Assembly (NCBI GenBank): GCA_020137815.1
Contig: CM035353.1
Span: forward strand, 6,572,001 to 6,636,000
DNA: 64,000 bases
Reading direction: 5' to 3'
Source: Hormiphora californensis
Taxonomy: Eukaryota > Animalia > Ctenophora
In this document: positions 46,195 through 63,208 of the stretch, in pieces
How positions within the stretch are numbered: position 1 is the first letter of the stretch
Layout: every line of letters starts with the position of its first letter
Translations under genes and position numbers: made by a program
Notes under the pieces: generated by a model
Database searches by the model: none
Told to the model about the DNA's origin: nothing
Seen by the model: only the letters and a program-made list of their open reading frames with translations

Positions 46195-49100
46195 TCAAGA
46201 ATCCTCATCAAATGACCATAATTTTAGTGAGTTTTCCTCTTTCTCCCCCTCTTCATCATCTTCACACACGGCCTTGAAGTGCCTCCTTCCACTTCCACTG
46301 ACAACCCACCCCCATCGAGGGTGTATAGATACACAACTGACTGTGTCACTGTGTCCCAGCCAATAACAATCCGGCTCCACAGACCCTCCTCCTTTGATAG
46401 TCCTCCCCTCGAACAAAGAGATATGCCCTGAGTGGTTTCCAGTTACAAGGTTCCCAGTGGTGAGCGAGACGTCAAACTGGAGGCGTTGGTTGGTTGATAC
46501 TACTCGAGGTAGCAGGGTGAGGAGAGGTTTTGAGGTTGATCGAGTATCAAACACATAAATGTTGTTCTCCATTCTCGTTCCACAGTAGAGATACGTACCT
46601 AGGGTGGAATTGGGTGTGTGAGTATAAAGAGGAATCTACATGCAAACTTTGTTTGGTAACTTCTCGACTCCCCTCCTTTCCCCACTCAACATTAACTTCT
46701 CAACTCCCCTCCTTTCCCCACTATCAGATATAACTTCTCAACTCCCCCTCTCCACTCAACATTAACTTCTCAACTCCCCTCCTTCCCCACTCAACATTAA
46801 TTTCTCAACTCAACTCCCCTCCTTCCCCACTCCACTCAACATTAACTTCTCAACTCCCCTCCTTCCCCACTCAGATATAACTTCTCAACTCCCCCTCTCC
46901 ACTCAACATTAACTTCTCAACTCCCCTCCTTCCCCACTCAACATTAACTTCTCAACTATCAGATATAACTTCTCAACTCCCCTCCTTTCCCCTCTCCACT
47001 CAACAATAATTTCTCAACTCCCCCTCTCCTTTCCCCACCACTCAGATATAACTTCTCAACTCCCCTCCTTTCCCCACCACTCAGATATAACTTCTCAACA
47101 TTAACTTCTCGACTCCCCTCCTTTCCCCGCCACTCACCATCAGCGCTGAACATGAGTTGTGTGATGCCCCGTTCAGGTCCGTAGAACGGTAGAATGGGCC
47201 CTGCTATTTGGGTACTATACAGGGAGAGTGTGGTGTTGTAGCTGCCAGCAGCAAAGGTCCCACTGTAGGTTGGGTGTCTGGCAAGGGCACTAACTATGGC
47301 ATTGTTGTTCTGGTGCTCCATGTCACCCGCAGTCATCTGCAGAAAGGGGTGTCAATTATAGGGTGTCAATATAGAAGAGGGGGGTCTAGTCATCTGCAGA
47401 GGAGAAAGGGGTGTCAATAGGGTGTCAATATAGAATGGGGGGACTAGTCATCTGCAGAAGAGACAGGGGTGTCAATAGGGTGTCAATATATAGATTCAGA
47501 AGTACTAAAGTGTTCAATTATGAATCAGAGTGCAGAAGAAGGGTGTTCATATATTGAGGGGTTGTAATGACCGCCTGGGTCCCCCCGCCGGGGGGGTCGT
47601 CACCTTTTTTTTTGCCCACATTTGCCCACATTTGCCCACATGGGCAAACTGAAATCTCAAAAAACAGGTATAATGTGGGCAAAGTGGGCAAAAAGTGGGC
47701 AAAAATATTATAAGCATCAAAACTTTGGCAGGTGCACAGTTGCTCGACAGTCTATTTCTGGCTGCTATTTCTGGCTGCTATTTCTGGCTGCTAGACCTAT
47801 TTCTGGCTGCAAGCAGCCAGAAATAGATTTTAGCAGCCAGAAATAGGGTCTAGCAGCCAGAAATAGGGTTTATCTCACGTGATCTCTCTATCTCTGGGAT
47901 ACGAGAGACGAATCGGTGAAGTGATTCGGTATCTGCGACTAATTTGGTATGGGATACGGGAAACGAATCGGTGAAGTGATTCGGTATCTGCAACTAATTG
48001 GGTATGGGATACGAGAGGCACCTCTTTTGTTTTACCGGTCCCCTAGCTCCAAACTTGAAATTCAAGACATCGAATATGTGTTATCACACCCATTGCGTCA
48101 AATCACCGATAAACTGATCTCATATCACGCTGTGTAACATGTCGGGATAGGATAACCGATAAACAGTGTAACTTTTCATGCCTAGTGTCAAAATTCACAA
48201 ACAAGGTGGATGGGACCCATTATGACAATCCATTATAGCAGCGCCCGACTGAGGACTACACCATACTCGATCTGCAACTAATTTGGCAGGTCCCGTATCC
48301 CATACCCAATTAGTTGCAGATACCGAATCATTTCACCGATTCGTCCCCCGTCTCCCATACCCAATTAGTTGCAGATACCGAATTACTTCACCGATTCGTC
48401 TCTCGTATCCCATACAGAGATCAGGTGAGAGAAACCATATTTCTGGCTGCTAAAACCTATTTCTGGCTGCTAGACCCTATTTCTGGCTGCTAAAATCTAT
48501 TTCTGGCTGCTAGACCTATTTCTGGGCGCTTGCAGCCAGAAATAGGTCTAGCAGCCAGAAATAGGTCTAGCAGCCAGAAATAGGTCTAGCAGCCAGAAAT
48601 AGGTCTAGCAGCCAGAAATAGCAGCCAGAAATAGCAGCCAGAAATAGACTGTCGAGCAACTGTGCACCTGCCAAAACTTTACCAGAAAACCCTCTGTGAC
48701 AAATGTGTTTCACCTCCAATGTCTTCCAAGAGGTCCCCTCTATCGATTCCAACCGATAATTAATGTACTTACTTATGACTTAGGGTTGATAAGGCTCCAT
48801 GTCCGACTGGACAAAAGTGGGCAAAAATTTTTGGCAAAATTAGGCAAAGGCCAGTGATTTTTCGTCATTTTGGGGCTATTTAGGGAACTGATACATAACA
48901 AAGGTTTTCCACTTGCATTGTACTCCAATGGGGTCCCAGAAAGACCAGAAAAATTTTCCACTCCAATTATGTGAGAAACGTGCCTAAAATGACCAATTTT
49001 CCTAATTTTACCAACATATTTTGCCCATTTTTCCCAGTTGGATATGGAGCCTTATCAACCCTGAGCAAATAAATTATCGGTTGGAATCGATAGGGGGGAC

Positions 49101-61645: not shown

Positions 61646-63208
61646 TTATTGAAGCATTTGTTTCTTTTTGTCAAACAAAAACCGTTTAAAAGTTAATTTC
61701 ACCGTTACTCTGTCCCCACCCGCATCCTTCTTCTTCTTCTTGTCTAACAAGACCTTAGCAGCATCAGTCAACCCCTCGGGAACATTCACTTTACACTTGC
61801 CACTGTTTCCGAAACTCCCCTCAATCTCTCCACTCTCCCCGGTACTCAGTTTAACACGGAGATGTGTAAACAGGTCAATATCGGTCTCCTTTTTAAATAG
61901 GTCCTTAACGATCACGGTATACTCATCATTCATTCTCTCTGCAATACCCTCCCTCTCCTTGGTCTTGTACACTTTCAACGCAGAAAGGGAGTCGTCAGAT
62001 GTGTAGGTTGGGGAGGTGATTGAGTGCTGGATGCGACCCCAGAATGCGAGGCGACATGTTGGCGAGTTGATGTCCATATCAAGACGACTTATTATCACCA
62101 TACTGTGCGGGACACACTGTACTACGTGTTCAAGTTCCAGCAACGCAAACACACCATCCTTCTCCTCCGGGTAACTCTCCTCAAATTGGTATCTGTTTTC
62201 AAACGAAAACTCCCCTCCTTCTTTGGTTGGAGAGCTAAAGAAAGTCAGCTGACCTAGGACGGTTTCATGTCCGACGCTGATATGATATTTAGTCTTGCTG
62301 GTTACAGAGCCCTTGTAGTAAGGCACCTTGTGAAGATCAATTATAAGAGCATGTACCATTTGTACCGCATCACCTGTGTACACAAGACCACGCTCGAGGA
62401 GTTTTGCATCAAATTGTGTCACACAAATACCCGCTCTGTCACCTGCTGAAACTTTATCAACTGACTTGTGAAACACCTGCATACTCTTAACCTTCCGCTC
62501 CAGTTTCGTGTCTGCTATTTTGATAGTTCCATTGACGGCTATACTCCCGGAGAGACAAGTACCGGTAAAGATTGTTCCTTGGCCACGGATCCCAAAACAA
62601 TGATCAACAGCGAACACGAAATCGCCAGCCGTATCGCGAGTCCTCAGTTTTACGTTATTTGAAATGACACTCACGAGGTCAGTGATGCCGATGTTGCTCC
62701 CAGCTGAACATGATATCACTTTACAATCCTTGAACTTGGTTTTCGAAAGGGTCAGGCTTATCTTCTTAGTGACTTTAGCTATCTGTGCATCCCTCTTTGC
62801 TTCCGGTATAAGATCAACTTTGTTCAGTACTACCAGAAGATTATCACACGTTAACTCCCCGATAATCAGACACTCTGCAGTTTGCGTTTGGATCCCTTTC
62901 ATAATGTCAACCACCAGAATCATCATGTCAATGATGTGTGCTCCTCCTATCACGGTTTTTAACAGCGAGGCATGCCCTGGACAATCCACCAACGTGACTA
63001 ACAATTCCTCGTGACAGCTACCAAGGTGAGCGGGGAAGGGCATTTTAAAGGAGGAAAATCCTAAATCCAACGTTATTCCCCGCTCTTTACTTTGGGGATT
63101 TTTGTCAAAACATGCCGTCGATGCCACCTCACTGAGGGACTTGGCCAGCGTCGTTTTCCCGCTATCGACATGACCGAGAATCCCGATGTTGTAGTTAGGT
63201 AGGCTCAT
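61646..63208 (-). CDS. EEFSEC: Selenocysteine-specific elongation factor (eEFSec/SelB), intronless, 520 aa
   Basis: NIGILGHVDSGKT, STACFDKNPQSKERGITLDLGFS, DCPGHASL, GIQTQTAECL, NKVD, VDHCF, CRLAFWG, GEIEGSFGNSGK. Confidence 0.97.
   Translation of the reverse strand: MSLPNYNIGILGHVDSGKTTLAKSLSEVASTACFDKNPQSKERGITLDLGFSSFKMPFPAHLGSCHEELLVTLVDCPGHASLLKTVIGGAHIIDMMILVVDIMKGIQTQTAECLIIGELTCDNLLVVLNKVDLIPEAKRDAQIAKVTKKISLTLSKTKFKDCKVISCSAGSNIGITDLVSVISNNVKLRTRDTAGDFVFAVDHCFGIRGQGTIFTGTCLSGSIAVNGTIKIADTKLERKVKSMQVFHKSVDKVSAGDRAGICVTQFDAKLLERGLVYTGDAVQMVHALIIDLHKVPYYKGSVTSKTKYHISVGHETVLGQLTFFSSPTKEGGEFSFENRYQFEESYPEEKDGVFALLELEHVVQCVPHSMVIISRLDMDINSPTCRLAFWGRIQHSITSPTYTSDDSLSALKVYKTKEREGIAERMNDEYTVIVKDLFKKETDIDLFTHLRVKLSTGESGEIEGSFGNSGKCKVNVPEGLTDAAKVLLDKKKKKDAGGDRVTVKLTFKRFLFDKKKQMLQ

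Follow-up and report, generated by a model that had tools for sequence, protein, structure and literature searches.

Are neighbouring genes in a ctenophore transcribed together and separated afterwards by spliced-leader (SL) trans-splicing, as in an operon, or does each of them rely on a promoter of its own? The question is raised by a dense cluster of eight genes in Hormiphora californensis, which occupies positions 46195-63208 of a stretch of 64,000 nucleotides (nt) on chromosome-scale contig 4 of this species (assembly GCA_020137815.1, contig CM035353.1, positions 6,572,001 to 6,636,000 of the forward strand). The whole stretch is referred to here as the window, and positions are counted from its first letter unless stated otherwise. 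SL-resolved operons are known in nematodes, tunicates, flatworms, chaetognaths and Hydra. SL trans-splicing itself, which the initial annotation of this stretch had taken to be known in ctenophores, has indeed been published for H. californensis (PMC8527503), and its presence in this species is already known and not new.

We put the probability that at least some neighbouring genes of this cluster are productively co-transcribed at about 0.5, and regard the dense cluster as a good candidate operon, or as two. Such an operon is credible and as yet unproven; an SL junction has been mapped at the gene PSMD7, and polycistronic transcription is what we infer.

Layout of the gene cluster

The initial annotation had placed eight genes on the minus strand, in the order EEFSEC, TMEM120, RBM8A, a Pex14-N-like reading frame, POLR2L, PSMD7, LYRM7 and WRAP53. 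Strand and places are confirmed by stop-to-stop reading frames and profile matches, and the same order is found within 46195-63208. Spliced gene models were searched exon by exon (Pfam, PDB), and exon frames were checked arithmetically. In the direction of transcription, the genes are as follows (aa, amino acids; E, E-value).

61646-63208, minus strand: EEFSEC (selenocysteine-specific elongation factor), single exon, 520 aa, with four eEFSec/EF-Tu Pfam domains
59300-61515, minus strand: TMEM120, several exons; predicted trans-splice AG at 61515-61514, ATG at 61511, stop at 59302-59300
56239-57485, minus strand: RBM8A (Y14); ATG at 57479, stop at 56418, poly(A) site near 56239; RNA contig joints and a weak RRM match
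55933-56123, minus strand: gene of a Pex14-N-like microprotein of 62 aa; AG directly before the ATG at 56121
55455-55800, minus strand: POLR2L, two exons; predicted trans-splice AG at 55800-55799, ATG at 55794; RNA_pol_N match (E 5.6e-13)
52840-55202, minus strand: PSMD7, seven exons; SL junction at AG 55202-55201, ATG at 55195, stop at 53105-53103, poly(A) site near 52840
51289-52616, minus strand: LYRM7, two exons; AG 52616-52615 directly before the ATG at 52614, stop at 51312-51310; frame checked
46195-51121, minus strand: WRAP53/TCAB1; predicted trans-splice AG at 51121-51120, ATG at 51112, stop at 46195

Genes follow one another every 2.1 kilobases (kb) in the cluster, whereas the mean for the genome is one gene in 7.8 kb.

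A spliced-leader junction at PSMD7

The RNA data consist of assembled marine metatranscriptome contigs from four runs, which were aligned over 51050-57050. These contigs are assemblies of processed mRNA, in which transcript starts, strand and precursor RNA are invisible. At PSMD7, a 1285-nt contig of run X1 passes six introns, the joints of which are common to runs X1, X2 and X3, and its aligned end lies at 55202. Beyond this position, the contig carries 26 non-genomic letters, which read AACACTACTTTAAACAAATTAATTTG in mRNA sense, and the final nine of the same leader letters are found at 55202 in run X7, which stems from a different study. The string sits inside the published 44-nt SL of H. 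californensis (PMC8527503). Since the published SL ends in TTTGAG, the alignment continues through the genomic AG at PSMD7. The sole copy of the leader in the window lies at 2390-2409, on the opposite strand and 53 kb away from PSMD7, and the join is thus the product of trans- and not of cis-splicing. The PSMD7 ATG is preceded by a true SL trans-splice acceptor, an AG seen in use in two independent studies.

For LYRM7, a contig of run X3 aligns from 52616, that is, from the AG before the ATG, and continues for 19 unaligned letters; these letters are consistent with the SL, and LYRM7 probably has an SL acceptor of the same kind. The spliced structures of several genes are visible in the same data, including the LYRM7 intron joint 51461/52476 in X2 and X3, a POLR2L joint 55562/55700 in an X3 contig of thin coverage, and the RBM8A joints 56581/56735 and 56822/next exon in three or four runs. 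Furthermore, loose runs of T mark poly(A) sites near 52840 (PSMD7) and 56239 (RBM8A). The microprotein gene and the 5' end of WRAP53 had no contig coverage in the four runs.

The initial annotation had proposed that these acceptors receive an SL and had suggested searching transcript 5' ends for a common non-genomic leader. Such a leader is found in the metatranscriptome contigs at the PSMD7 AG. The broader proposal stands for PSMD7, with leader letters in X1 and X7, probably also holds for LYRM7, with its 19 unaligned letters, and remains a prediction for the other six genes.

Acceptor sites before the start codons

The acceptor strings that had been quoted before the ATGs are found in the sequence exactly as given, and each of the eight ATGs has an AG 0-7 nt before it. 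Under a stricter definition, namely at least seven pyrimidines out of ten followed by AG no more than 8 nt from the ATG, the sites of four of the eight genes qualify, whereas 8.4% of the ATGs across the whole window do so (binomial P = 0.0026). The acceptor of PSMD7 is part of a small tandem array.

55202-55265, minus strand: tandem array of CTAAC (branch-point-like), pyrimidines and AG, period 19-23, about three copies (Tandem Repeats Finder)

The last AG of this array (55202-55201) is the trans-splice acceptor in use, as the SL junction falls at 55202. A comparable arrangement exists in the acceptor region of WRAP53 (51121-51215, minus strand), where a unit of about 45 nt is present in two tandem copies. 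The duplicated acceptor units, three at PSMD7 and two at WRAP53, could supply spare or alternative acceptors.

Short spacers and the case for co-transcription

Recomputed from the sequence, the stop-to-ATG gaps between successive genes measure 134, 1820, 296, 138, 259, 488 and 197 base pairs (bp), in exact agreement with the values given before. The mapped poly(A) sites allow two of the spacers to be measured more closely. The RBM8A poly(A) site is about 117 nt away from the ATG and acceptor of the microprotein gene, and the PSMD7 poly(A) site about 224 nt from the LYRM7 acceptor. For the remaining short spacers, the distances from stop to ATG (134, 138, 197 and 259 bp) are upper bounds. At the 138-bp spacer, the TAA stop codon of the microprotein gene overlaps the only canonical AATAAA in the gaps of the cluster, and POLR2L starts 138 nt beyond.

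In spacers this short, there is hardly space for termination, a promoter and an outron. The short distances from poly(A) site to acceptor (~117 and ~224 nt) are the real argument for co-transcription, albeit a suggestive one only. The gene density, the short upper bounds of the other spacers and the housekeeping content are suggestive in the same direction. Genes of translation, the exon-junction complex, RNA polymerase II, the proteasome, mitochondrial assembly and telomerase belong to the class that is typical of metazoan operons.

In the most likely course of co-transcription, RNA polymerase II would start upstream of EEFSEC, in a CpG-rich spacer, with further starts possible in the longer gaps, and would read through the very short spacers, giving rise to polycistronic precursors of neighbouring genes. 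Candidate groups would be EEFSEC-TMEM120 and RBM8A-microprotein-POLR2L-PSMD7-LYRM7-WRAP53, or parts of these. The upstream mRNA would be cleaved and polyadenylated and the downstream mRNA trans-spliced, the 5' end of the pre-mRNA being swapped for the 44-nt SL donated by SL RNA genes elsewhere in the genome, to yield capped monocistronic mRNAs, in the manner of the operons of nematodes, tunicates, Hydra and chaetognaths.

The putative first promoter and the longest gap

Two intergenic regions are of particular importance for the question of where transcription would begin.

63209-63930, minus strand: unique spacer of 721 nt that separates the EEFSEC ATG from a guanylate cyclase gene, with one copy genome-wide
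57636-58851, no strand assigned: interspersed repeat of 1.2 kb, present on many chromosomes in 40 or more copies of 90-97% identity, with internal inverted segments of 85 nt

The CpG observed/expected ratio of the unique spacer is 2.16, the top value in the 74 kb examined. The spacer also contains, about 175 nt upstream of the EEFSEC ATG, the palindrome GCGCGTGCGCG (63385-63395), the only one of its type in the same 74 kb. On these grounds we infer that 63209-63930 is the likeliest site of the first promoter of the cluster. As a separate observation, the GCGCGTGCGCG palindrome, which lies inside the CpG-richest patch, resembles an NRF1-type site.

The 1820-bp gap between TMEM120 and RBM8A had been described as repeat-containing, and about two thirds of it are in fact occupied by the 1.2-kb repeat, which is probably a young non-autonomous transposon recently inserted between the two genes. 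When the repeat is subtracted, the gap measures about 605 bp. A model with two promoters, drawn from two CpG peaks, was considered and dropped: the second peak (58001-58700) is the repeat, and CpG peaks are common across the window. Since the second peak is a repeat, CpG content is an unreliable marker of promoters.

Co-transcription or separate transcription

The alternative that survives best holds that the cluster is simply dense, and that each gene is transcribed alone from a compact promoter at the 3' end of the gene upstream, with SL splicing removing a short outron; co-orientation would then be due to chance or be a relic of local rearrangement. We consider this explanation quite possible, if somewhat short of an even chance. 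It draws on a number of observations that weigh against co-transcription, the first of which concerns the SL itself. SL trans-splicing is near-ubiquitous in this genome, whatever the arrangement of the genes, with at least 56% of H. californensis Iso-Seq reads carrying the SL and more than half of all transcripts in the annotation starting with AG (PMC8527503). An unpaired acceptor before an ATG is therefore the default and provides no evidence of an operon, and SL addition does not tell operon genes from single genes.

The second concerns orientation. By our own arithmetic, about 50 same-strand runs of eight are expected by chance among the 14,265 genes, and the co-orientation of eight genes is thus unremarkable by itself, dozens of such chance runs being expected. 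The run moreover exceeds eight genes, as the receptor guanylate cyclase gene upstream is also on the minus strand, and this neighbour is not a housekeeping gene. Thirdly, TATA-like strings are present in several of the gaps, in which they precede a number of acceptors by 55-220 nt, and compact internal promoters may lie in these gaps; those of 488 and 1820 bp could accommodate promoters by their length. Finally, no contig bridges any intergenic spacer in the four runs, and depth is zero in the bins 55271-55471 and 55874-56074, and an SL junction was seen at none of TMEM120, POLR2L, WRAP53, EEFSEC, RBM8A and the microprotein gene, for which there is no informative 5' contig. Assembled mature mRNA rarely shows precursor, and the missing bridging contigs therefore weigh only weakly against an operon.

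Separate transcription in turn has to cope with the same short spacers: ~117 nt between the RBM8A poly(A) site and the next ATG, and at most 134-138 nt from stop to ATG in two other pairs. Upstream read-through would normally cover such acceptors anyway, and the CpG-rich signature seen upstream of EEFSEC, a weak marker, was seen in no short spacer.

The initial annotation had gone further than co-transcription of some neighbours and had favoured one eight-gene operon with a single promoter upstream of 63208. This strict version shares all the evidence for co-transcription and can also point to the unique CpG-rich spacer upstream of EEFSEC. It has to bridge, however, the 1820-bp spacer (~605 bp without the repeat) and the 488-bp gap between PSMD7 and LYRM7. 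Known operons rarely tolerate such long spacers without internal promoters. We consider the strict version unlikely, and its single promoter for all eight genes is the least secure part of what had been proposed.

Highly improbable, lastly, is the explanation that the AGs are ordinary cis-splice acceptors of unannotated non-coding 5' exons: by sequence alone, an acceptor before an ATG could end an intron of the 5' untranslated region, but the sequence joined at the PSMD7 AG is the SL, which is encoded nowhere on the strand of the cluster in the window and is found about 667 times genome-wide, with donor-bearing SL RNA genes on another contig, and a cis-spliced 5' exon at PSMD7 is ruled out by the SL at the junction.

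Two further sources of evidence were explored. For gene order in relatives, a metagenome search with EEFSEC returned 45 loci, the full-length matches of which had at most 52% identity, and the two best of them, the only ones inspected, had no leader and no TMEM120 downstream. The idea of using SL-headed retro-copies of cluster genes as fossil SL junctions was abandoned, EEFSEC and the last RBM8A exon being single-copy.

Taking co-transcription of neighbouring genes as the preferred reading, we place the wider claim, that ctenophores have true SL-resolved operons and that this cluster is one or two of them, only just short of an even chance.

Identities of the clustered genes and their surroundings

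The assignments of the eight genes are of different strength. EEFSEC, of which there is only one copy in the genome, matches its four domains at about 1e-29 to 1e-36 (eEFSec_4th, E 7.8e-36; GTP_EFTU, E 3e-33; euk_SelB_III, E 4e-29). The gene is intronless, unlike all its neighbours except the microprotein gene. TMEM120 is recognized by TMEM120A-B Pfam matches on exon pieces (E 3.5e-16, 4e-9 and 7e-16), which cover profile positions 116-291. Its last two exons were read from the sequence with a GTAAGT donor and an AG acceptor, and the stop was placed at 59300. PSMD7 has a JAB/MPN domain (Pfam E 2e-8) in an intact frame, and WRAP53 matches human Telomerase Cajal body protein 1 (TCAB1) in the PDB (E 5.7e-13). 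For RBM8A and LYRM7, the domain matches are weak at exon level (RRM and Complex1_LYR, respectively), and the spliced structure is confirmed by the RNA contigs.

The 62-aa reading frame is only weakly similar to Pex14_N (Pfam E 0.085; PDB E ~1). It has a 73-aa homologue (P0001) of 87% identity with an identical C-terminus and, judged by this conservation, behaves like a conserved microprotein gene.

Two introns of the cluster have unusual contents. One intron of PSMD7 (53190-53318, minus strand), 129 nt long and with canonical GT...AG borders, is almost nothing but a (CT)n microsatellite; the 129 nt are divisible by three and keep the frame open, yet mRNA contigs from two runs are without the intron. 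The LYRM7 intron contains, at 51574-52051, a plus-strand open reading frame (ORF) of 140 aa that resembles a retroelement tail. An RNA contig of run X3 is 100% identical to 51891-52051 within this insert, part of which is thus transcribed somewhere in the population.

Upstream of the cluster, at L070 1-9700 (window-equivalent 64001-73700), the minus strand carries the receptor guanylate cyclase gene, which has kinase-like and cyclase domains and the catalytic-domain exon of which is confirmed by Pfam. One of the introns of this gene seems to hold a nested long ORF on the same strand (L070 1773-2887), which is similar to seven-transmembrane proteins.

Source of the leader

The 22-nt core of the leader has about 667 copies in the genome, of which only 92 are followed by GT, leaving about 575 without a GT donor. 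Most of the copies that were read, a sample, run into unrelated sequence and ORFs. Because such sequence comes after the leader, most of the sampled copies can be classed, on their sequence, as heads of retro-copied RNAs and not as SL RNA genes. The copy in the window is an example. At 2368-3474 on the plus strand, the full leader (2368-2411), without a GT donor, is followed by a short conserved motif and an ORF of 347 aa, which had no Pfam match. This segment has the appearance of a mobile element that was retro-copied and carries the SL at its head.

True SL RNA genes are found on contig 13, where a cluster of at least seven, in both orientations, lies at 3,181,666-3,195,356. They combine the 44-nt SL with a GTAAG donor, three stem-loops and a CUUUUGG Sm-like site (fold z = -4.5).

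Significance

In the genome paper of H. californensis, the SL is described, and operons or polycistronic RNA are mentioned zero times (PMC8527503). By the same paper, no colinear block in common with Mnemiopsis exceeds four genes (PMC8527503). A survey of 2021 stated that operons had not been reported in ctenophores (PMC7986045), and no later report was found in the literature searched (ctenophores, Mnemiopsis, Pleurobrachia); a chaetognath paper of 2025 lists ctenophores as having trans-splicing only. If the operon reading is true, a very early-branching lineage, possibly the sister to all other animals, would join the operon-bearing animals, and this would bear on the question whether operons come about in every lineage with SL trans-splicing. 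The annotation of ctenophore genomes would change as well, and so would the reading of their promoters and regulatory domains. Annotation practice would be affected since the published annotation of 14,265 genes required manual splitting of fused transcripts. The locus lends itself well to the testing of operons, given its short spacers, the two poly(A) sites and one SL junction mapped so far, and the public Iso-Seq and RNA-seq data for the species.

Comparison with known systems

The closest comparison is with the SL already described for the same species (PMC8527503). The leader found here is identical, and both its TGAG end and the AG at the start of transcripts match. Schultz et al. (2021) counted 718 "leader loci" in H. 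californensis (PMC8527503), whereas in the samples taken here most leader copies are heads of retro-copies and not SL RNA genes.

The operons of Caenorhabditis elegans resemble the cluster in several respects, namely in their same-strand housekeeping genes, in a distance from poly(A) site to acceptor of about 100-200 nt in the nematode, and in the position of the SL just upstream of the ATG. The nematode, however, uses a dedicated SL2 for downstream genes. The contigs examined here show one leader sequence, and the type of SL therefore cannot mark operon membership in the ctenophore. In addition, polycistronic RNA is proven in nematodes, whereas the present case is known from the gene arrangement and from mature-mRNA contigs.

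Compared with the 117-224 nt measured here, most intercistronic regions of tunicates are shorter. Where tunicate units are very compact, stop codon and poly(A) signal are as tightly packed as in the microprotein gene, where the two overlap. Tunicates such as Ciona and Oikopleura further share with H. californensis the use of one SL for monocistronic and operon genes (PMC7986045), a compact genome and a housekeeping content, although they belong to another phylum and have an independent SL sequence.

For the chaetognath Paraspadella gotoi, an operational definition of operons has been used, under which genes must lie within less than 250 bp of each other and one member or more must bear an SL; most pairs of the cluster fit this definition. 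It is based on annotation and would call the cluster "validated" without showing co-transcription.

Among non-bilaterian animals, the parallel is Hydra, with its RFC140-flp operon and further candidates. Here, too, the SL is long (46 nt in Hydra, 44 nt in H. californensis) and the spacer has a few hundred nt, and the Hydra candidate operons, like the present one, were first proposed from genome arrangement. The RFC140-flp pair was then verified by a two-reporter transgene together with a promoterless-spacer control.

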